Source of the DNA: Gracilinanus agilis
Taxonomy: Eukaryota
NCBI RefSeq assembly: GCF_016433145.1
Contig: NC_058130.1
Span: 255,413,771-255,477,770, forward strand
Direction of reading: 5' to 3'
Length of the DNA stretch: 64,000 bases
The position numbers were made by a program, and so were the translations under genes. The notes under the pieces were generated by a model. The model searched no databases. It saw only the letters and a list, made by a program, of their open reading frames with translations, and was not told the origin of the DNA. Of this stretch, positions 11,406 to 57,727 are shown piece after piece (position 1 is the first letter of the stretch; each line of letters opens with the position of its first letter).

Positions 11406-11599
11406 CAGTGATTCCCAAAGTGGTCACCACCACCCCCTGGTGGGTGCTACAGCGATCCAGGAGAGCAGTGATGGCCACAGGTGCATTTATCTTTCCTATT
11501 AATTGCTATTAAAATTTTAAAAAATTTAATTTCCAGGGGCTCTAAGTAATATTTTTTCTGGAAAGGGGGCGGTAGGCCAAAAAAGTTTGGGAACCACTG
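11406..11599. mobile_element. Non-autonomous hAT (Charlie-type) DNA transposon / MITE
   Basis: Terminal inverted repeats CAGTGATTCCCAAA ... TTTGGGAACCACTG, about 194 bp. Closely similar to the copy at 45696. Confidence 0.85.
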
Positions 11600-15608: not shown

Positions 15609-15741
15609 NNNNNNNNNNNNNNNNNNNNNNNNNNNNNNNNNNNNNNNNNNNNNNNNNNNNNNNNNNNNNNNNNNNNNNNNNNNNNNNNNNNNNNNNNNNN
15701 NNNNNNNNNNNNNNNNNNNNNNNNNNNNNNNNNNNNNNNNN
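15609..15741. other. Assembly gap
   Basis: N run. Confidence 1.
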
Positions 15742-23767: not shown

Positions 23768-26700
23768 TCACAAAGTCTTCTTCTGCAAGGGCCACGTGGC
23801 TCGCCACTCATCCACCTCCAACAGATGACGCTCTGTCTCCCAGCCTACGGCCTGTAGATCTGGTGGGAAAAGGTTCCTCATAACCCACTGAAGGACTCTT
23901 AAATCTATTACCTAGGCTCTCAACCCCTCCCCACTTTAAAGCCAAGGAAGCAAGTTCAGAAAAAGGAAGTGATTTGCCAAGGTCATACAATGAGTAAGTG
24001 GAAGAGCCCAGATGATTAGAATCCAGCACCCTCAAATTTTCAGTTCAGGATAGAATGGTTAAAGGAAGGAGTGTGGATCATATTACCTTTCAAGAACTTG
24101 GGGTAGAGTCTATCAAGGATTTGGTAAGTTTCCTTGACAATGGTCCAACTGTCTCCTTTAGGGGCTATGGAGCAGAAACAATAACCAGGGTGAGCTCCTC
24201 CTCTGAACTAGCCCTTCTCTCTTCCTGCTATGCCCTATATAAAACCCTTAACTCTCACCTGCCCTGATTTGACCCCTCAGGGTTTCCAGCTCTTCCATAA
24301 GGGGCACATCCTCCAACAGAGTTGCCAGCAAAAGTCCATGTGTCGCTGCCCTCAGAATGACCCCAGCATTTACTTCCTGGCCCAAAGTCACCTGTATCTG
24401 ACCTGGAGAGATAGAGGTACAAGGTATGGTCTGGCACATTAGTCTCTAGGGCACACCTTAGGCATTCCTCTACGTCTTTGCTCCTAGAGTGCCTTCCCTT
24501 CTTCCCTGCTCATCCCTCAAGGCTTTACTCAAATGCTACCTCCACATGGAGCCTTCCCCAATGGCCTTAGTTCACACTCTATTCTTTCCTCTTTGAACTC
24601 CATTTATTGTCACATTTGACTATTCCACTAGTGGCCTTTAGCTTACATTTTTGGGTTCATTAGGTTTGTTTTTATGTGCACATATCTCCCCAAATTCATT
24701 TGTAAGATCCTTGAGGACAGGGATATGGTTTACACTTAATTGCTTTATACAAGTGCTTAATAAATTAACTGCCTGCCTGATAACCAGACTGGAAAATATC
24801 TTTGGAAGAACAATTACAAAGATCTTGTGGAGAAAGAAAGAGAAGTGAGTAGTGACTGCTATATGAGGGGAGATAGAACAATTGGGTTTCTTCTGATTGG
24901 AAAGATGAAGACTGAGACAGAGATATGATGAAAGCATATAAAGTCATATGGAAAAGGCAGATTTCTTTCCCAAATCTTTGATTATAACAGAGAAGAGTCC
25001 TACTGGGAGCTATGAAGTCTACTAAAAAGAAAACATATAATCATTTGGATGGGAGTAAATTCGCAGAATTTGAAACCCGAAAAAGTCATATAGCCAAGAA
25101 AAATGTGCATTTACACATACACACTTCTTTCTAAGCTGTAGCTTAGGAATTTACAGCTCCATACTCATAGCTGGAAAGGCCTTTAAAAGTCAATGAGTTC
25201 ATGATCCAGCCATTCTGGCTGGCAATTTGGAATCATGCTCAAAGGGCTATAAAAGAATGCCTTCCCTTTGATCCAGCCATACCATTGCTGGGTTTGTACC
25301 CCAAAGAGATCATAGATAAACAGACTTGTACGAAAATATTCATAGCTGCGCTTTTTGTGGTGGCAACAAATTGGAAAAGGAGGGNNNNNNNNNNNNNNNN
25401 NNNNNNNNNNNNNNNNNNNNNNNNNNNNNNNNNNNNNNNNNNNNNNNNNNNNNNNNNNNNNNNNNNNNNNNNNNNNNNNNNNNNNNNNNNNNNNNNNNNN
25501 NNNNNNNNNNNNNNNNNNNNNNNNNNNNNNNNNNNNNNNNNNNNNNNNNNNNNNNNNNNNNNNNNNNNNNNNNNNNNNNNNNNNNNNNNNNNNNNNNNNN
25601 NNNNNNNNNNNNNNNNNNNNNNNNNNNNNNNNNNNNNNNNNNNNNNNNGGGGAAAGGTGGAGCATGAATCATGTAACCATGTTAAAAACGAATATTAATA
25701 AATGTTAAAAAAAAAATTAAAAAAAAAAAGAAAAAAAAGTCAATGAGTTCATATATCATGAGCTCACAATGGCTGGCACATTCATTTCATACTTGTAGTC
25801 AACTAAAATCAAGTCTTTTTCACACAAACCACTGTCAAGTGAGGTCTCCCTAATCTTGTAATAATGCAATTTAGGCCTTTATATCTATTCTTGATCACTT
25901 TCTTCTGTTAGTTTTAGTCTGTCTTACGGCCCTGGGTTACAGAACACTAATGGTCTTTAAAATAATAAAATTTCATATTACTCAGAGAGCAAGAAACATA
26001 GAGGAGCAGGCTACATCTTCCAATCTTCCTGAAATCTATTCTACATACCTGATGGTTCAGACTCTACCTAAACACTAAAAACAGTGACAGGGAATTCAAT
26101 TACTCCTGAAGCAAATTGTTCCACTGCTGGACAGCTTCATACATTAGAAAATTCTTCCTCACTGATGAATGACCACAGACTGAAGCATTACTTTTTTTAC
26201 TTTATTATTCTTGGATTTTGTTTTGGGATTTTGTGTGTGTGTGTGTCTTTTTTTGCAACATGGCTAATATGGAAATGCTTTGCATGACTTCACATTTATA
26301 ATCGATATAATTTTGCTTGCCTTCTCAAAGGGTGAGGGAGAGAACTTGGAACTCAACATTTTTTACAAATTGTTAAAAAATTTCAAATTGTAATTGGGAA
26401 ATATTTAATGAAATAAAAATTTAAAAATATGTACACACACATATATATGAAAAATTCTTCTCTATGATAATTTGAAATCTGCCTTTTTGGAGCTTTTACT
26501 CTTAATAATCTTAGTAATGCCCATAGGAGCAACACAAAACAAGTCTCTCCCCTCCTCTTCCCCCCACCCATGAAAGTCCTTGAGATGCAAGGCACCCCAA
26601 AAGCCTTATTAAAACTTAAAACTATAACAAATGCTTTTGAGATACCCTAAACACCATTGTAGCCCTTTAGGTCTCTCTCTTCCAGGATAGTCTATTCTTA

Positions 26701-43525: not shown

Positions 43526-43996
43526 ATGGCTCTTCTTCAGTCAAATCAGGATGTCATTTCCTCAGCAATGCAGGAGTTTAGCAAATTGCTGAATCAGCAG
43601 GTGAGAGGGGTCCTTTCCTAAGCACCAGGAGATATAGAATATCTTGGCTTTTGGAAATAAGGTGGGAGTTTGATGGAAAAACTGGGGGATAGGAAATGTA
43701 GCTTCTGGGAGATGTGTAGTGACTAATGGGAAGTTTGAGTGCCTGGAGATCAGCACATCTGAACAGCAACCTCCTCTCTCTCCTTTTGCCAGGATTACAC
43801 ATACCCTATAATCTCTGAGAAAGACATGGTTACCATTGTAGATGACTGGATGAACTACTACCTTTCATACTTCTCGAAAAAGATGACAGGGGATCAACAA
43901 GAACAGGAGAGAGCCATGCAAAAACTTCAAGTGGAACTTCAATCTTCTGCCAACCCTTTCCTGGAGAAGTACAGAGCCTTTCTAAAATCCCTTTGA
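43526..43996 (+). CDS. AHSP: Alpha-hemoglobin-stabilizing protein, 92 aa
   Basis: Exon 43526-43600 encodes MALLQSNQDVISSAMQEFSKLLNQQ. Exon 43793-43996 encodes DYTYPIISEKDMVTIVDDWMNYYLSYFSKKMTGDQQEQERAMQKLQVELQSSANPFLEKYRAFLKSL*. Colinear with human AHSP, same 75-nt first coding exon, syntenic after RUSF1. Absent from the ORF track because it is spliced. Confidence 0.96.
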
Positions 43997-45695: not shown

Positions 45696-45883
45696 CAGTG
45701 ATTCCCAAAGTGGGCACTACACCCTGGTGGGTGCTGCAGCGATCCAGGAGGGCAGTGATGGCCACAAGTGCATTTATCTTTCCTATTAATTGCTATTAAA
45801 ATTTTAAAAATTAATTTCCAGGGGGCTAAGTAATATTTTTTTTGGAAAGGGGACGGTAGGCCAAAAAAGTTTGGGAACCACTG
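45696..45883. mobile_element. hAT MITE inserted into a SINE, with 8-bp TSD
   Basis: Same inverted repeats. TSD gactaggc / ggctaggc. The SINE tail sequence continues on both sides. Confidence 0.88.
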
Positions 45884-48800
45884 GGCTAGGCAATGGGGGT
45901 TAAGTGACTTCCCCCACATCACACAAATAGAAAGTGTCTGAGGTCATATTTGAACCCAGGCCCTCCCATCTCTAAGGCCATTTCAAGTGCTTCCTCCCTT
46001 GTGATCTTCAGGTCTATAAAGACCTTCCTTCTTGGATCAATGACCAGCTCCTTGAGAGCAGGGACCATGTTTTTTGGCTATTTTAATAAATATTTCCAGT
46101 GTTTATCATAGTGCCTGAGACATAGTAGGCACTTAATAAATGCTTGTTGATTGCCTCTCCAATGTATTTGATATTTAAAGCCCTCCACAATATGATAGCT
46201 GCCTACCTTCCCAGATACTTCATATCACTCTCTTCTATGTACACAATAGTGATGGGGGGAGCAAGGAGAGAGGGATGGGGGGTGGGGTGGGAAATGACAG
46301 GCTAAGGGCAAAGGCCAGAAGAGGATCATTTCCATTTAGACATTGTGGAAAGGAGCACCAAGAGATTGAAATGGCAAGTAATAGAGGAGAAAAAGATTAA
46401 CTTGGAAAAGAAATGTTCAAAAAGGACTTTGATCATAGAAATGGAAAAGATGGAATGAAGTCAGAAGGGAGGAAATAGGTAAAGTCTCCTAATATCAGAG
46501 GGTGTCATATTCCATACAACCACCAGATGGTGAAGCAAGACTATGGTTGAAGTCTCAGAAAGCTAATCCTGGGGGGCAGGAAAATCATGAAATTTAGGAT
46601 ATTAGTGCTAACAAGAAATTTAAAGATTTTCTAGTCCAATATTCTCATTTTATAAGGTTAGAATACTGAGGCCTTTGACTTGCCCAAGATCATACATCCA
46701 ATTAGTAACAGAGATTATCTACACTTTGTTTTCTCTTTAAAATGATGACTAAGGAAGAGACTAGAAGAGACAATATAGTATAATACAATGAGCACTAGAT
46801 TTGGAGCCAGAAGTCCAGAACCTGAGTTTGAGTGAGTGTGTGTGTGTGTGTTCCTCCCTCAATTTCCTCATATGTAAAATGAATTCATTGTGCTAAGTGG
46901 TTTCAGATGTCTCTTCCAGCAACTAGGGACTTATAAAATGAACAAACAAAATAATACACAGAAGACTGTGATAAGGGAAAAGAAGTGATCCATACAAAAT
47001 GCCATAAGACAACTTTGGAAGGTCACAGCACTATAGCTAGTTTTACAGGGAAAGTATCATGGAAGGGGTAACACCGGAGGTGCATTTTGAAGGACAAGAA
47101 GGATTTTTGACAGGTCACAAAGGATAGATTGGGTAGACATACAGAAATACCAAAATGTAGGACAAGGTCAAGGATTAACCAGTAGCCCAGTGAGACTGGA
47201 ATGTAGAGTGTATGAAGGAGAGTAGTGTTAAATAAGGCCAGAGAGGTAGGTTAAAGATTATCTAGTCCAATATTCTCATTTTATAAGGTTAGAACACTGA
47301 GGCCCTTGACTTGCTCGAGATCATACATCCAATTAGTAACAGAGATTATCTAGGTTGGAGTATCATTCTCACAGTTTCTCTTAGCCTCCTTTGCCTCAGC
47401 CATCGATAAATGGCAATCAGAGATGCAACTAGGGGGAGTAGGGATGAGGAAAAGGATGACTCCTTAGCTGCACTGAAGATAATACAACTCGGGGTGAATT
47501 CACATTGGTAGAAGAAAAGGCTCAGATACTAGAGAGTCTTGCCACCAAGAGTTTGTTGAAGGAGATAGAAGGCAAATCTCATGATGATGAAAGGAGCCTG
47601 GGAGTGGCAGCCAGGGGCCAGGTGAAGTAGTAGGGTCATGAGATTTAGTGCAATCTTGTTGTAGATATCAAGGCACAGGAACAGTGGTCTACAGACCATC
47701 ATCAAGAGGAAACATCCCTCCACAGGAGAAAGTGTGTTCCCCTATGTGTCAGCACCATGAGGAAAAGTTCTAAGTACCTCACCTTAGTTTCAGCTCTACT
47801 CTCAGATTTAGAATTTCCACTGAATGACTGTGGAATACCTCATAATATCGGGACAGAAGTTAAGTCTAGGGCACTAAAGAAAAACGTTGTCAGTAGGATT
47901 CCCAAAGTAATTGCCCCAATAAAACAATTTTTTTATTTAAAATTTTCATTTTATTTTTGAAAAATATTTTTCCATCTTCCCTCCACACTTCCAGAGCCGA
48001 CAAGCAATTGCACTAGGTTGTACAAATGTTTTCATTTGATACCTATTTCCACATTATCCATTTTTACCATAGAACAATCTAACAAAACAAATTTTGAGTG
48101 AAGTCTTCAGCTCTGAAATCTCAGTCCAAGGATCTTCCCAGACTTCCAGTAACCATACAAAAGGAAAGAAGTCTTCTGCTTCCAAGAGACTGTGGTTCCA
48201 TCTAAAGCGTATTTTACCTCATCTTATGATGACATAATATCAGACTGCATTAACTGGGAAGCCGGGACTTCAGAGTGTGTGACCTGCTGAGGGGGTAGGA
48301 TCCTAACCTAGTGACAATTGGTTTCCATATGTAATTGGCATGACAATATGAGGCAGGGTTGGTATCTTCATCCTACTATTCACCCTGCATGACAACACTT
48401 TGACATGTTGCAAAGGAAGTTTTCCAGAATTTTTTAGGTTATAGGGTCTACGAATAAGGGAGAAAATGGGGAAAGCAGGGTACCTGGGTTTTGGAGAATC
48501 CTACCTTATATCACTTTGTCCAAGCCTCATAACCCAAAATACCTTGAATATACTTTGTCTTTGCCAGCCTTCAAGTCTCCTGTGTTCCATCCCTTTCTTG
48601 TTCATAACTGGTCTCTAAGTACTTTGAGTTGCCCTCAAGGGTTTGTATCCCAACTTACCTTTGTATTTACAAAGCCTAGCACATTACTTATACATAATAG
48701 GTGCTTAATAAATGTTGTATTAAATTGGTCATCAACTTTCTTTGGCTACTTATTTATCTCTATTCTTGATGGTTCTGTTGATATATTGGGTCTTCCTGAA

Positions 48801-50252: not shown

Positions 50253-50771
50253 GAGTAAATTATATTATTATTATTATTATTATTTTTGCTTCCTCATTTA
50301 GTAAATATTTCATGTTTAAGAATCAATGGTATTATTAAGACTGATTTTATACAAATGAAAAGAACACTTTTTTGGGCTAAGGAACTATAGTGGTGGTTTT
50401 CACCCTACATCAAAATTACTCCTAGTCTCCTGTCCCTGATAATGAGTATATCAGTGTAGTGGAAGACATGGCTAGCCCTCCCATTCTGGGAAAATGAAAA
50501 CAAAAAACTACACAGATTTGCCTGTTTAAGTTAATGTTGGGATGAGTGAGCCAGGACAGAAAGTGTGAAAGCCTCTGCACTAACAACCTAAAGAAATAGC
50601 ATTAATTCACTGACTCTTTTTAGACTATAGCCTGTTTCAATAAATGCAAAGCTTCCCTGATTTAATGTTTATAATCCTGAGACTTAGCACAATATTTTGC
50701 ACATAGAGTTGACTAAATTTTGAAATTTAATCATTCATTTCTATCATGGACATCTGAATCAATGTGTAGGG

Positions 50772-50834
50772 TTTTTTAAAACCCTAATCCTCTGTCTCAG
50801 AATCAGTATTATGTGTTGGTTCCAAGGCAGAAAG
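50772..50834 (-). mobile_element. SINE 3'-tail fragment supplying the last codons and stop of the RNF112-like gene
   Basis: Minus strand reads ttctgccttggaaccaacacataatactgattctgagacagaggattagggttttaaaaaa. This matches the tails of SINE copies in this window, e.g. about 20339-20395 and about 56709-56767. Confidence 0.85.
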
Positions 50835-53800
50835 AATTCCCACTATACCACCAGCTAACGCCAGGATGCCAACTCCCACAAGTCCACCTAGGGCAGAAGT
50901 ATGGCCACAGAAACGCATTTTGTAGGAATCCTGGAAGTCCTTAGCTTTTTTCTGAATCTCTTTCTCAAAACTGTCCATAAGTTGGCTCTTCCCTGGGCCC
51001 TTCAAAGTCATTCTGAGATTATTCAAGACAAGATCTTTCTTAGTTGAGAGGCGTTTCCACATGTCTTTAGGAAGAATCCTCACAGCACCAAACATGACCT
51101 TTGTGGAAGAATCCTGAAAGTATGGAAGAAAAAGCTGTGGTTGCTGACTGAGCACCTTGGCATTCTCACCCTGAGCCCAAGTCTTTGCTATTCAGATTGC
51201 TTTTATTTTGAGAATTCAGGTATCCTTCATTTCAGTTCTCTTTCCCTGTCTAGATGAACTCAATTAATTTTTTCTTTCTCTAAAAAAAAAAAGTTTTAAT
51301 GTTGCCTTTTATTTTTTTATATCTCATTCCTTTTTTACAAAGGTATGCCCTTCCTCTGGCACCCAACTTACCAATTTCATCTGATAGTATATGCAGCATT
51401 CTATACCCATACTTTCCCATGCCTTCAGTGAAAGGTAGAAGCCATGTTTGATCATTACCATTATGGACAGAATTCAGGATGGTTGAGTGGAGACCAATGA
51501 TTTTATTTCCTTTGCCTGCCTTTGCTTCTGACTCAAATTCATTTGTAGCTAAGCCAGAGAGGATATTGGAAGTTTGTTAAATTGTCCAGACCCTAGATAA
51601 TGATCTATAATAGAAAGCTTAGGATCCTAGGCCAGTCATAGGGTCAAAAAATAAAGACCTATCTTTTAAAATCTTAGCTTGAACAGTCTTCATAGATTTT
51701 GTCTGGGTGTAGTAGCTAGTCAACAAGCATGACTAAAGAATTATCAGTCAGTCCTTATCAGACAGAAGTTTTAACCACTATTCCCTAGCAGAATTAATTT
51801 GAAGTGGCTAAGTTGGCTCTGAAGAGATTTTAGTTACCAAGGGAGACAGGAAATCTAGTGGAGGAGCACCCATAGAGAGGAATTCTGGCCTAGTAAACCC
51901 AGTAGATTCACCAGAGGACATCAGAGATCACTTTAGAATATAGAGGAACAACTAACTGCCTCTGATGCTTTAAGATCCCTGATGTGCCCTGGTGAATTCA
52001 TGTGTAATAATAATAGCTGTGCATGATCACTCAGGTCATATGGATATTTGTATGATAAAATACCCTACATTCATGGAAGGAATATTTTATTAGTCTTCTA
52101 ACTCTGCTATTTCATTTAGCACCTTTGCTATGAACTAACTATATCCTCTGGATGACTAGGGAAAAAGTAGAAATATCAATGGGAATTTATGAGTTGTTGT
52201 GAGTATCTTGAATCTGGAGCAGATTCTTCTGGGAAGCCCATATGTAAGAAGGACAATTAAAATTCTGAAGGCTTACCTGTTCCTTTATGAAGTCCTCCAA
52301 ATCTTTTGTAGCATCTTTAATCCTCTTCACATTGTGGAGGTCAGTAGCCATCTGTTCAATGAAAAGAAAGCCCTCATGCATGTTGCCTTTCATTCTCTCC
52401 ATTTTGGAATTCTGTTCCAAGTCCCTCACCTACCTTTATTTCCTACTTAAACCTACTCCAACCCCATGTTCTCTTGAAGACAGATACTGACTCCTTAGAC
52501 CTGTTTCTCTTTCTAGAATTAAAATCCTTCCCAGAACTAATAGGCAAGACTCTACCGAATCAAGTGAGGAAGAGAATCCAAATTCTTTCTTCTTTACCAG
52601 GTCAGAGAGTGTCTGCAGATAAATTCAAAGGGACAATTAGAAGTTACAGAAGAAGGGACAGGTAGGTATAAGATTCATGGAAGTTGGAGAAGTTGCCCAT
52701 ACCGAGATCTTCTCAGCTAATTCTCTACCAGTGAGAAAATTCTCAAATGACCATTCTGCCACATTCTGGATAGCTGAACTGCAAACATCTGTGATGTAGG
52801 CATGTAGATGCTCATAGAAATCTGGGTCCATGTCTAAGAAAGAGAATATTTGTGATCCTGGGAAATTCCAGTAGCTAGGAGTAAGGTGGCTGGTGTTTAG
52901 AAGGGAATCAGAATGTTGGTGAGGGGAGATCAATTACACTTTGGGAAGAAGTTACAGGGACTTCTGGATAAAGAGGAAGTTACCTTCTGGATTTGCATTG
53001 CCATTGCATGCCACTTTTTTCCCAGGAAATGGCAAGAGGTAGCAGTGGATTTGTTTACTCCTAAATGCCTTCTGAATCCTGGGGTATTTGTCAGAGATTT
53101 TCTAAAGAAAAAGCAAGACCTCAAGAAGGTTTCAACCAGGCTTCAGGTGGTAGCTTCATTCCTATGCCCTCTCCCTTTCTGAATGTTCCATTACTACTTT
53201 TTTTTCCTCCCTGAACCCAGGCTTGATGTCCTTCTTTCCTGCCACCCTCCAAACAGCTGACAAATTGATATGCTTAAAGCACAGGTTCTATAAATTAATC
53301 TCTATGGCTTTCTTTTGACTCTGGAATTAAATACAAACTAGTTTGTTTGGTATTTACAACCCCTCACAGCCCACCTTTCTAAGTCCTTTATATTTACTGC
53401 TCTATATATACTCTATGACCTAGCCAAACAGGTTGCTCTTCCTTGAATTTGCCATGTCTCTCCCTCCTTACAACCATCTCAAATGACTCCTCCTAAAGGA
53501 GGCCTTTCTGATTCAACCCAATTGTTAGCATAGATTCTGTATATACTTATATGTGTACCTATTGTCTCTACTACCACCACCATGAAAATTTAAGTTCTTT
53601 AAGGGCAAATTTTTTGCTTTAAATTCAGCCTTCCCTAGGGTACAGGTCCTGCTCAATAGTAGGCATTTAATTCATGCTTATTGAATGAATCAACCAATGA
53701 ATCAGTTGACAAATGTTTGCACTTGCCTGGATCACATCATTCATGTGTGCTTGGCCTGCTTCCTCTCCAAACGTTGCTGGATAAAACCAGTCCCGAACTA

Positions 53801-54017
53801 AGAGATCCAGATGCTGAAAAAGAAGAAAAGGTAAGACAGTTTGACAAGTGGATTCTAGAGGGGGTTGAAGTCTCAGGACAAATGAACTGGACAAACAGTG
53901 CCTCACCTGTATTGGTTTCATCTCAAAATATTCTCCTATTTCTTCAGCAATGTGGAGGAACATCTAGTAAGCAGATACAAGTTAGGGCACTTCTTGTCAC
54001 AGAACCAAGGTATCCTT

Positions 54018-54061
<44 letters not shown>

Positions 54062-56467
54062 AGTCTCTTTGACTCCACAAGAGAAACTACTGGTTCTCAA
54101 AGTCACACTCTGAAACCAGGCATTTTATATCCCTGACTTAGTTCTTTAGCTCATACCATTTCTTCTCTTCCCCTTGTTCTGCTGGAAGTTCAAATGTATG
54201 CTCACCTCCAGATGTTCCAAATCTGTTTCCTTCAGCATCCGAGAGACATTGAGAATCTAGGGAACAAGGAAGACAGGGAAACAGGGAGGAAAGCCAAAGG
54301 TAGGAGAGGTGATCACCTGATTCCTGAGAGTTTCAGAAAGCAGGAACTCTAATTTTTAGAACAGACACATTCTCAGAGTGGGATTATTACATCTTATGAG
54401 AGAAGAGGTCTTTTTTCCTAAGGCAACATCAAGAACCTTTTAGCGAAATGGTCCTCTTCCCTCTCTTGGCCTCTGTGAAGAGATCAAACCTTTTCTAGTA
54501 GAGTTAGGGGATACTTTTAAAATATTGCCTTAAGGACTCTTTAGAGCTAGGACTTATTAAATAAAATCATAGAAGTTAGAAGAATTAAGCAATCTTTTTC
54601 ACCAAATACACTGTGGCTGATTCAAATTCAATCTCTCTGATCTAGAAGTCTCATTAATTTTTTTACTTATACAACATATACATCAATTATATAATGATTA
54701 AAAAATGCGAATCATATCCACTTTTATGGATTTTAACTAACCATTCATTCCCAGTTACAACAATATAGATACCAATCCTATCCCATTAAGGCAGTACACT
54801 GGAATAGCTTTTGTAATTTTCTTTTAGAATCTAGATAATGAAAGTATTTTCACCATTCCTGTTTTGTTCAGTGCCCGAGTAACAATTCAAATCTGGCCTA
54901 AAAATCCTAGTAGGTCAGAAATGAGCTAGAAGGGGAACTGTCTGAGAGAGAAGAACCCACAGGCTAAGGAACAAAATGCCTGGGTCCTAGGCTTTCACCT
55001 GAAAGGAGCTGAGCAGCATGGTGAGAGCAATGAGTTTGGCATTTGTTTCCTTGTCTGTTTCTAGACTTATGGTCCCTTCTGTGTCCACAAGAAATACAGC
55101 CACCTAAAGGATAGAGGGGAGAACCAGGGCATGAGGTCAAAGTTTCCCTGTGGCCCTCTCATCTTTCTGCCCTTCTTCCCTCAGAACTTTCTCAATTCTT
55201 CTAACCTTCACCTACCTGTCTTCCCTCAGTTTCTCTCCTCTCTTTCCTCTCTTATTTTCCCCACCCCTACACCCACCTTCCTTCCTCTTTTCCATCATCC
55301 ACCTCTTACCTCATTCTGGTTTTTGCCTTCCACTTTACAACCTCCCCAGTTCTGTCCTTTTACCTCTTTCCCCTTCTTCTTCAGAATAAATGGCTGGCTC
55401 CATATCCACAGGCCCTTGGTGACACTTTGGGCTCCTGGTTCACACTGGAACCCCTGAAGAGCTCTTCCTTCTTTTATCCTCTGGGGATCCTTGGACTTTT
55501 GAAGAGAAAGAATGAATCATTTCTCCCCATGACTCAAATATCATATATACAAAATTCCTCCTTTAGAACCCATTTTGCTCTCTTTTCAAAAACCAGGTCT
55601 GGATCTCTTAACCTTGAGCTTCTTTCAGAGACTTTCTGCCTCAACTCATTTCCCTTCTTCCCATGTTCCTGTCCTCTCCTCTCCTCCACTGTCTAGGCCA
55701 CAGAACCCCAGTCCCAGATCTTACCAGACTCTGCAATTCTTGGATTAGATAGTTGAGAAGGAAAGACTTTCCTGTTCTTTGCTCCCCCACGACAGAGATG
55801 ACACAGATTTTAGTATTCCTGACTTGAGGGTGATTCAGACACTGAGACAGAACATCTAGATTGAGGGTGAAATCCTTTGTGGAGTTAACTTGAACCAACT
55901 GCAGAGGTTTTGCCTCTACATTGGAAACATCATAGGGGTTCTGAGGAGAAGAAGGAAAATTCTTTAAACTTCTTAATCTTCTTGGACTTGACCATATAAT
56001 GAAGGAGTTCCCCTCCTGTCATCCTAACCCGTCTAGAAAGAACCCAAAGTTCACTTATCCCGAATTAGGCAAAAAGCAATTGGTAAGTGTTTGCTTTGTG
56101 GGAGACACTCTGCTAATCAGTCCCAGAAACTCATGAGACTATAAAGCCTCAATCTCTGACCTGGTTTGGGTTTGTCCTCTGTTGAAGGGAGTTCATTTTC
56201 TCCAACAGACTCCGGAGTCGAGTGTCTGGAACTAGCTGACTCCTGTCACACCTTCTACGGCACTCAGGGCAGTGAGGTGGTTGGGAACCTGGAACACCCG
56301 AGTCCCAATGACAGGTGATACACTGAGCACAGAAGTTGTGGCCACATTCAATGGAGACAGGATCCCGGAACAACTCCAAACAGATGGAGCACGTGAGGTC
56401 AGACTTCAATAAATCCAATGGGTCAGTTAAAGTGCTCAGTGAGGGGTTTCTCACAAGGAAGCTGGAT
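50784..56467 (-). CDS. RNF112-like RING finger plus atlastin/GBP-family large GTPase (divergent paralogue; 5' exon(s) not resolved; at least 554 aa)
   Basis: Exons: 56467-56161 (C3HC4 RING, CSICLELFRDPVSIECGHNFCAQC...CPEC), 55940-55725 (P-loop GEQRTGKS), 55495-55364 (VTKGLWIWSQPF), 55103-54999 (VAVFLVDTEG), 54256-54206, 53963-53907, 53813-53727 (HLDLLVRDW, GC donor), 53101-52984, 52833-52703, 52612-52556, 52351-52277, 51113-50784 (DSYKMRFCGH plus hydrophobic segment). No frameshift or internal stop. Exon pattern parallels human RNF112 as I recall it. Confidence 0.9.
54021..54058 (+). repeat. (CT)n microsatellite in an RNF112-like intron
   Basis: Directly visible. Confidence 0.95.
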
Positions 56468-57558
56468 CTAAAGATGCAGAAAGCAGTGTTGGAGAGGAGA
56501 ATGTCTAGATGTAGGAAGGGCAGTAGGAGATAATGTGGGAGCTGGGATCGTGGCTAGAATTTTAAGAGGGAAGGGTAGGGGGCATCTAGGTGGCTCATAA
56601 ATTGAGGGCCAGGCCTAGAGATGGGAGGTCCAAATCTGACCTCAGACACTTCCTGGCTCACCTACCCTGGACAGTAACTTAACCTTCATTGCCTAGTCCT
56701 TATGGTTCTTCTGCCTTAGAACCAATACACAGTATGAATTCTAAGAGAGAAGGAAAGGGTTTCAAAAGATGGAGAGAGAGAAAAGTGAGTGGGAACAAAT
56801 TAAAGTAGATTATTTTGATATATAATTTCTCTTTTTAATCCTTCTTCATAAATCTCTTTCTTTGTGGATTGCTGTGGCAAGGAGAGATTATTAAAGAAGT
56901 AGAGAAGAAGAATTCCTATTCTTCTTGATCTCAGATGAATTTGTTTATTATAGAATATTAGAAATAAAAGGAATATCATAGGTCTTCAGTCTGACTTGTC
57001 ACCTAATGCAGGAATACCTTCTTATAGCACTATCTTCTGTTTGAATATTTCCAGTGATAAAGAATTCCCTACAGATCAAAGTAGACTATTTTCTTGTTGG
57101 ATAGCACTAATTTTTACAAAATTCCTTTTTATATAGAGTTGAAATTTCACTGACTGGTAGTAATTTTGCCTTCTGTAAGAGGCCACAAAGGAGAAGATTC
57201 TTTCTTTTCCATAACTATCCTTTCAGATATTAGAATACAACTATCATGTTTCCCCTAAGTCATGACTTGTTCAGTCTGAACAACCCAAATCTCCTTCAAT
57301 CTGGACTCATGATTGAACATTAACTATCACTTCTACTTACAAATGGTCATTTCCTTTTTCCATCAAGAAGGATTTTTATGTCTTTGAGAAGATGAAATAG
57401 AAAAGTGACAGAGACACAAGATAAAATAGTTAGTGCTGAACCTTGGCATCCCACAACTCCCTCCTTCTGTCCCCCTCTCCTTTCTCCTCCTCCCTCCCTC
57501 TTTTTTCTTCCTCCCTTTCATCTCTTTCTTTCTTTCTTTCTTCCTTTCTTCCTTTGTT

Positions 57559-57727
57559 NNNNNNNNNNNNNNNNNNNNNNNNNNNNNNNNNNNNNNNNNN
57601 NNNNNNNNNNNNNNNNNNNNNNNNNNNNNNNNNNNNNNNNNNNNNNNNNNNNNNNNNNNNNNNNNNNNNNNNNNNNNNNNNNNNNNNNNNNNNNNNNNNN
57701 NNNNNNNNNNNNNNNNNNNNNNNNNNN
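57559..57727. other. Assembly gap
   Basis: N run inside a pyrimidine-rich SINE tail. Confidence 1.

Follow-up and report, generated by a model that had tools for sequence, protein, structure and literature searches.

The 64,000-nucleotide stretch of Gracilinanus agilis DNA analysed here (the window; contig NC_058130.1 of assembly GCF_016433145.1, positions 255,413,771 to 255,477,770 of the forward strand) carries on its minus strand a tandem copy of the RING-GTPase gene RNF112, whose last exon runs directly into the 3' tail of a short interspersed element (SINE). RNF112 homology stops at the ATT codon at 50837-50835, which is codon 546 and closes the peptide ...GGIVGI. The open reading frame (ORF; minus strand, 50784..51155) continues beyond this point and ends ...GILALAGGIVGILSALEPTHNTDSETED, with a TAG stop codon at 50786-50784. 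Reading through into the SINE requires no splicing and adds 16 residues, and on the sequence this ending is the simplest reading of the exon; that the SINE tail provides the real C-terminus of a protein we put at about an even chance. Judged from the homologues compared below, the loss of the distal part of the membrane anchor holds whichever gene model of the locus is right.

The SINE origin of the final codons was established by comparison with other copies in the window. A SINE consensus of ~208 nt was built from seven window copies and used in local alignment, with 300 shuffles as the control. The segment running from 50832 to 50772 corresponds to consensus positions 148-208 (the last 61 nt), in sense orientation on the gene strand, with a score of 67 compared with 18.0±2.3 for the shuffles (maximum 27). 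Identity to the consensus is 49/61 in the local alignment and 50/61 (82%) when counted over MAFFT columns. Furthermore, the plus-strand 17-mer TTGGTTCCAAGGCAGAA occurs seven times in the window at two mismatches or fewer, against 0.05 expected, including an exact copy at 50816-50832, and a repeat finder and a multiple alignment both line the segment up with the 3' tails of seven or more other SINE copies in the window. An earlier note on this DNA, made from the letters alone, had proposed that the last exon enters a SINE 3' tail and stops at this TAG, and had named a failure to align with a SINE consensus as grounds for refuting it; the directly read ORF and the alignment score bear out the proposal, the match covering the last 61 nt of the window-built consensus.

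The window SINE copies are built like marsupial transfer RNA (tRNA)/CORE-SINEs, with a tRNA-like head (GGGGCAGCTGGGTAGCTCAGTGG...), a CORE (…CTAGCTGTGTGACCCTGGGCAAGTCACTTAACC…) that we take to be MIR-like, a ~60-nt tail and an A-run. The target segment matches the tail and the A-run, but it differs from such elements in comprising only their last 61 nt, with no head, CORE or target-site duplication. The window SINE is a marsupial CORE-SINE of the same kind as the Mar1 family and SINE1_Mdo (PMC3403934), names that serve here only as a lead. The fragment is the most diverged of the eight window copies (Jukes-Cantor distance 0.21), which, with a rate of 0.0045 per site per million years as given for WSINE1 (PMC3403934), would amount to tens of millions of years, although so short a piece (61 nt) makes the error wide. 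Upstream of 50837 the exon has no SINE similarity (score 16 versus 17±2.3 for the shuffles); a SINE origin for the hydrophobic part of the exon was likewise rejected, since the score there is no better than that of the shuffles. Neither the flank after the SINE nor the alternative terminal exon discussed below is a repeat within the window.

The stop codon arose by a change specific to this copy. None of the seven other window SINE copies carries it, and the consensus frame is open at this site; without the change, the frame would reach a TAA ~50 nt further on. The predicted C-terminus of the read-through product has one hydrophobic segment (…ALGGLVGVGILALAGGIVGILSAL; Kyte-Doolittle 19-residue maximum 2.31), which spans ~24 residues and ends 12 residues before the C-terminus of this hypothetical protein. 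Its last 16 residues have a net charge of -5, coincidentally equal to that of the ancestral tail. The single tail-anchor that the earlier note had imagined is consistent with this shape, in which hydropathy gives one ~24-residue segment followed by 12 polar or acidic residues, but the change of topology that it went on to propose is one we can only infer.

An alignment of 15 C-termini defines what the window copy has lost. Every homologue, that is, the neighbouring full-length paralogue described below and 13 others (marsupial, monotreme and eutherian), runs ~50-65 residues past GGIVG, through a second Gly/Ala-rich hydrophobic segment with several near-invariant Gly/Ala positions and then a charged, mostly acidic tail. 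The window copy retains only the first ~22 hydrophobic residues, and the missing part amounts to 60 residues in the full-length paralogue. The lost tail was not found elsewhere in the 64 kb. When the tails of five homologues served as tblastn queries, the only matches were scattered and of low complexity (best E 0.004), none of them near the 3' end of the gene, and no exon remainder is present beyond the SINE piece. Together, these observations agree with what the earlier note had said of RNF112, namely a longer hydrophobic region followed by an acidic tail, with the longer ancestral C-terminus that it suggested looking for in other marsupials, and with its remark that no remainder of the region is seen past the SINE.

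The way in which exon and SINE came together can be narrowed down. Insertion of a 5'-truncated SINE into the exon was rejected: by inspection the 5' flank is not repeated after the A-run, so that there is no target-site duplication, the exon has no remainder, and the fragment is diverged. Given this divergence and the missing target-site duplication, the junction is better explained by an event that brought an older downstream SINE up to the exon, whether a deletion, a rearrangement or a duplication breakpoint, than by a fresh insertion. A deletion or rearrangement would have left codon 546 abutting the final ~61 nt of a SINE that was already old and diverged and that points the same way as the gene. 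The cost would have been ~60 codons, those that encode the second Gly/Ala-rich hydrophobic stretch together with the acidic tail. From there the frame stays open for 16 codons of SINE tail, up to the TAG produced by the copy-specific point change. If transcribed and read through, the product would be a 562-residue RNF112 variant in which a single ~24-residue hydrophobic segment and 12 polar or acidic residues replace the long double hydrophobic region. The earlier claim that part of the anchor was exchanged for a SINE-derived acidic tail stands as regards the lost sequence and the 24-residue segment, but the SINE was probably not simply inserted.

RNF112 (ZNF179, brain finger protein) is a dynamin-superfamily RING E3 with an atlastin-like GTPase, and its C-terminal hydrophobic region contains, in Xenopus laevis, a predicted transmembrane helix plus a C-terminal amphipathic helix (PMC12012479). 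The window protein resembles RNF112 in having the RING, the GTPase, the helical middle and the start of the hydrophobic region, and differs from it in lacking ~60 C-terminal residues, which make up the remainder of the hydrophobic region together with the acidic tail. A C3HC4 RING lies at the N-terminus, in the exon at 56161-56467 (Pfam PF15227, PF13445 and PF00097; E ~1e-9 to 1e-10), and the P-loop exon, with the P-loop GEQRTGKS, begins a GBP/atlastin-type GTPase domain (Pfam PF02263, E 3.9e-8). The best solved relatives are atlastin (3x1d) and Xenopus RNF112 (9jju); the last exon alone had no match among solved structures. An exhaustive phmmer search with the last exon matched RNF112 and RNF112-like proteins, headed by a Monodelphis "RNF112-like" protein with 78% identity that is 50 residues longer past the aligned part. 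Over the full ORF, identity to Monodelphis RNF112-like is 82%.

Word-indexed searches retrieved two G. agilis proteins, XP_044513478.1 (P0020, 603 residues) and its cluster mate XP_044535562.1 (P0137, 650 residues). The exons of the latter are 100% identical to the window, except for one extra Lys at the exon 2/3 junction, and the window gene is therefore the XP_044535562.1 locus. The former is the full-length paralogue and is encoded ~7.4 kb upstream of the window copy on the same 801-Mb scaffold. In a maximum likelihood tree of 29 proteins, the window protein is sister to this paralogue (100/99), nested first in didelphids and then in marsupials. Eutherian RNF112 and echidna RNF112-like join the marsupials in a mammalian clade (100/100), without a settled order among its three groups. 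The topology tracks the species tree with lineage-specific duplications, which argues for lineage-specific tandem copies of RNF112 and against an ancient gene separate from it. Indeed, Monodelphis has at least five near-identical RNF112-like copies. By domain content and phylogeny, the window gene is a marsupial RNF112, one of at least two tandem copies.

The canonical read-through model comprises 13 coding exons and an uninterrupted 562-residue ORF that starts with the ATG at 57363 and closes with the TAG at 50784 (Table 1). Its 1.69 kb of coding sequence contain no frameshift or stop, and none of the 24 splice sites is broken. The introns are GT-AG throughout but for one GC-AG, whose GC donor (CAG/GCAAGT, the slash marking the exon boundary here and below) follows exon 8 at 53726-53727 on the minus strand. 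The frame is restored when the first exon is joined to the acceptor at 56468/56467, and the last exon begins at 51113 behind a good acceptor (ttcag/GAT). By tblastn, the RNF112-homologous part of this last exon is identical to the full-length paralogue at 88 of 94 positions and 78% identical to a Monodelphis copy (P0001), and it includes the first ~22 residues of the hydrophobic region.

Table 1. Features of the RNF112 copy and its 3' end, in window coordinates
Feature	Position	Strand	Remarks
RNF112 tandem paralogue	50784..57363	-	13 coding exons, 562 residues
First coding exon, MEKGNDHL	57341..57363	-	donor TT/GTAAGT; 6/8 residues as in paralogue MENRNDHL
Coding exons 1-5	57363-57341, 56467-56161, 55940-55725, 55495-55364, 55103-54999	-	read-through model
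Coding exons 6-10	54256-54206, 53963-53907, 53813-53727, 53101-52984, 52833-52703	-	read-through model
Coding exons 11-13	52612-52556, 52351-52277, 51113-50784	-	read-through model
RNF112-homologous part of last exon (DSSTKV...GGIVGI)	50835..51113	-	tblastn
Candidate internal donor ATA/GTGGGA	50838..50846	-	exon end 50844; NCBI XP_044535562.1
16 codons past the break (LSALEPTHNTDSETED)	50787..50834	-	all but the first two bases within the aligned SINE tail
SINE 3' tail fragment, 61 nt including A-run	50772..50832	-	sense; without head, CORE or target-site duplication
TAG stop	50784..50786	-	copy-specific A-to-T; consensus GGT AAG GGT, here GAT TAG GGT
ATTAAA polyadenylation-signal-like hexamer	50726..50731	-	52 nt past TAG; sequence match only
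Second ATTAAA hexamer	50666-50661	-	117 nt past TAG; sequence match only
NCBI terminal exon (GNTLSPVEG...GGKTL and stop)	47529..47741	-	100% over 70 residues

Up to GGIVGI (546 residues), the window copy and the full-length paralogue differ by 12 substitutions and one 3-residue (EWS) indel. These differences were polarised by eye against Monodelphis and Australian marsupials, and derived changes are about equal in number in the two copies, so that the truncated copy shows no obvious excess of decay. Half of the substitutions (6/12) cluster in the last 32 codons before the break, a concentration at the 3' end that would fit old paralogues homogenised by gene conversion except there. At 50886-50903 (minus strand) the window copy reads HT, as do Australian marsupials; the full-length paralogue and all Monodelphis copies read QA.

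Several considerations weigh against the SINE tail as the C-terminus of a real protein. No matches came from a search aimed at short protein sequences (transcriptome contigs, for example) that contain the last exon, whether or not the SINE ending follows. RNA sequencing from this species comes from kidney, muscle and liver only (PRJNA565840; PMC8390783); in eutherians, expression of RNF112 is described as specific to the brain (PMC12012479). The sole public gene model of the locus, XP_044535562.1, ends otherwise, and with a full-length paralogue so close by the window copy could be redundant and unexpressed. Finally, the assembly was made from short and linked reads (contig N50 56.9 kb, 8.25% gaps; PMC8390783), near-identical copies stand in tandem at the locus, and the junction is known from this assembly alone.

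The best-surviving alternative, which we find possible but doubtful, is that the duplicate is redundant, silent or decaying, disabled by the truncation, with a SINE ending that has no biological role and an ORF that survives only because little time has passed since the event or since the last gene conversion. The intact paralogue on the same scaffold is in line with this explanation, as is the negative fragment search, which gave no expression evidence for the last exon. The near-identical Monodelphis copies, at least five in number, suggest that the family turns over by tandem duplication, and the lost segment is conserved across mammals, so that its loss is likely to be damaging. On the other side, the coding sequence and all 24 splice sites are intact over 1.69 kb, and derived amino-acid changes are not in excess relative to the intact copy. 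Furthermore, the HT before the anchor is of the ancestral type, the intact copy having the QA of Monodelphis, which hints, from two sites only, that the 3' end of the window copy is not very young. Given the adjoining full-length copy, the window copy may simply tolerate the loss, or decay may have begun with it.

That the NCBI model is correct we consider unlikely. In this model the exon is spliced at ATA/GTGGGA (50844) to 47741-47529, which leaves the SINE tail intronic and yields a 70-residue, unrelated hydrophobic C-terminus. The structure is precisely that of XP_044535562.1, with its exons identical to the window bar the one Lys; the junction from 50844 to 47741 keeps phase 0, and an AG acceptor (cacatag/G) precedes the downstream exon. 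However, the donor scores -1.18 bits with a crude matrix, compared with 0.75-8.7 for ten of the twelve other donors of the gene; the donor frequencies are approximate, and the scores are a rough guide only. Across the gene span, 97 of 461 GT sites (21%) score at least as well. The terminal acceptor has the lowest pyrimidine fraction in the gene (0.60), and 33 other AG sites within 6 kb downstream would each give an open frame of 40 codons or more in that phase. The 70-residue peptide matches no Pfam family and has no homology to RNF112. In addition, the donor lies 7 nt before the repeat, and a gene predictor that masks repeats would be forced to leave the exon ahead of the masked sequence.

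The other end of XP_044535562.1 is also non-canonical. The conserved first coding exon is present in the window yet unused, and the model instead translates the pyrimidine tract and AG of the exon 2 acceptor (56468-56502, minus strand), while its N-terminus is absent from the window. These features count against the reliability of the model's ends, and its N-terminus is probably wrong. The extra Lys (LQSLKSKDPQ; 55495-55500, minus strand) would need an AA acceptor (ttcaa/AAGTCC). The canonical AG at the exon 2/3 junction gives LQSL-SKDPQ, the same as the paralogue; Monodelphis copies carry the Lys, and the site looks like the lost upstream site of a tandem acceptor. The translated acceptor and the AA acceptor suggest an ab initio or protein-guided origin of the ends rather than transcript support; both ends look like ab initio completions, and the terminal exon is likely spurious. 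The earlier note had named an exit at ATA/GTGGGA to another terminal exon as an outcome that would overturn its reading. The NCBI model does use that exit, but it is a prediction whose ends look ab initio, and therefore does not refute reading through into the SINE.

Least probable, and in our judgement very unlikely, is that the junction is an assembly or gap-closing artefact and the C-terminus of the real gene is normal: the assembly method and gap content (PMC8390783), the three N runs in the window and the GC-rich, repetitive, Gly/Ala-coding character of the missing segment, a kind of stretch that short reads can lose, would allow for it, but the nearest N run is 6.7 kb from the junction, the expected exon continuation and the SINE have no long word in common, from which we infer that a repeat-mediated false join is unlikely, and the six copy-specific differences in the last 32 codons before the break argue that the window copy is not a collapsed version of its neighbour.

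The N runs lie at 15609-15741 (133 nt), 25385-25648 (264 nt) and 57559-57727 (169 nt), the third ~200 nt upstream of the first coding exon, likely in the promoter or 5' untranslated region. Two 96-nt direct copies with 95% identity lie 34 kb apart on the plus strand (11428-11523 and 45715-45810). An exon of AHSP (alpha-haemoglobin stabilising protein; Pfam PF09236, E 5.5e-27) is located at 43826-43996 on the plus strand, convergent with the RNF112 copy and ~6.8 kb from its stop codon. This AHSP-adjacent locus differs from the neighbourhood of human RNF112. In a turtle, Pangshura tecta, an "RNF112-like" model (P0102, 893 residues) contains an AHSP fragment at residues 755-789 (PF09236, E 1.8e-6), after the RNF112 part, which suggests that the two genes adjoin in turtles as well; this fused model hints at an old RNF112-AHSP neighbourhood. 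The linkage may be ancestral rather than the result of a relocation in marsupials.

A further reading, which we think improbable, is that selection maintains the truncated copy as an expressed RNF112 variant, with a SINE-completed single-pass anchor, ending in the hydrophobic LSAL and the acidic end, that redirects the RING-GTPase. Were this true, the variant would occupy a different membrane or adopt a different topology from its full-length neighbour, and would represent a natural domain swap on the anchor of a dynamin-like fusion protein. The RNF112 anchor has been replaced by those of atlastin or Sac1p to test membrane remodelling (PMC12012479). Since the anchor is poorly understood, adjoining copies with and without its distal part could be informative. 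The analysis also exposes a public gene model in which both ends are probably wrong, the first exon having been missed and the terminal exon likely being spurious.

Tail-anchored proteins have a single transmembrane segment near the C-terminus and are inserted into membranes post-translationally. The hypothetical read-through product resembles them in having a single hydrophobic segment within ~30-40 residues of its C-terminus, and differs in that this segment is Gly-rich and moderately hydrophobic and is known from a hydropathy profile alone. Isoforms are known to become truncated, and paralogues to diverge, when a transposon fragment contributes a fresh stop codon and C-terminus, and the window copy would add one example in a little-studied marsupial gene family. 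Transposon-derived C-termini have been described for an IFNAR2 isoform (PMC10515820), for the Alu-derived short form of TAF8 (PMC12871804) and for the Alu-like exon 6B of SMN (PMC4969610). As in those cases, a SINE gives in-frame codons and a stop, displacing the normal C-terminus and a functional module; the transposon sequence lies in the genome in frame with the host codons. In contrast, the elements in IFNAR2, TAF8 and SMN are intronic and recruited by alternative splicing, the normal isoform is kept, and there is transcript or functional evidence, whereas the window copy, known from its sequence, is a fusion at the DNA level to the truncated terminal exon of a duplicate gene, with the normal ending deleted. 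The window gene is a transposon-capped truncated paralogue, the product of a known kind of event, and any function of it is putative.

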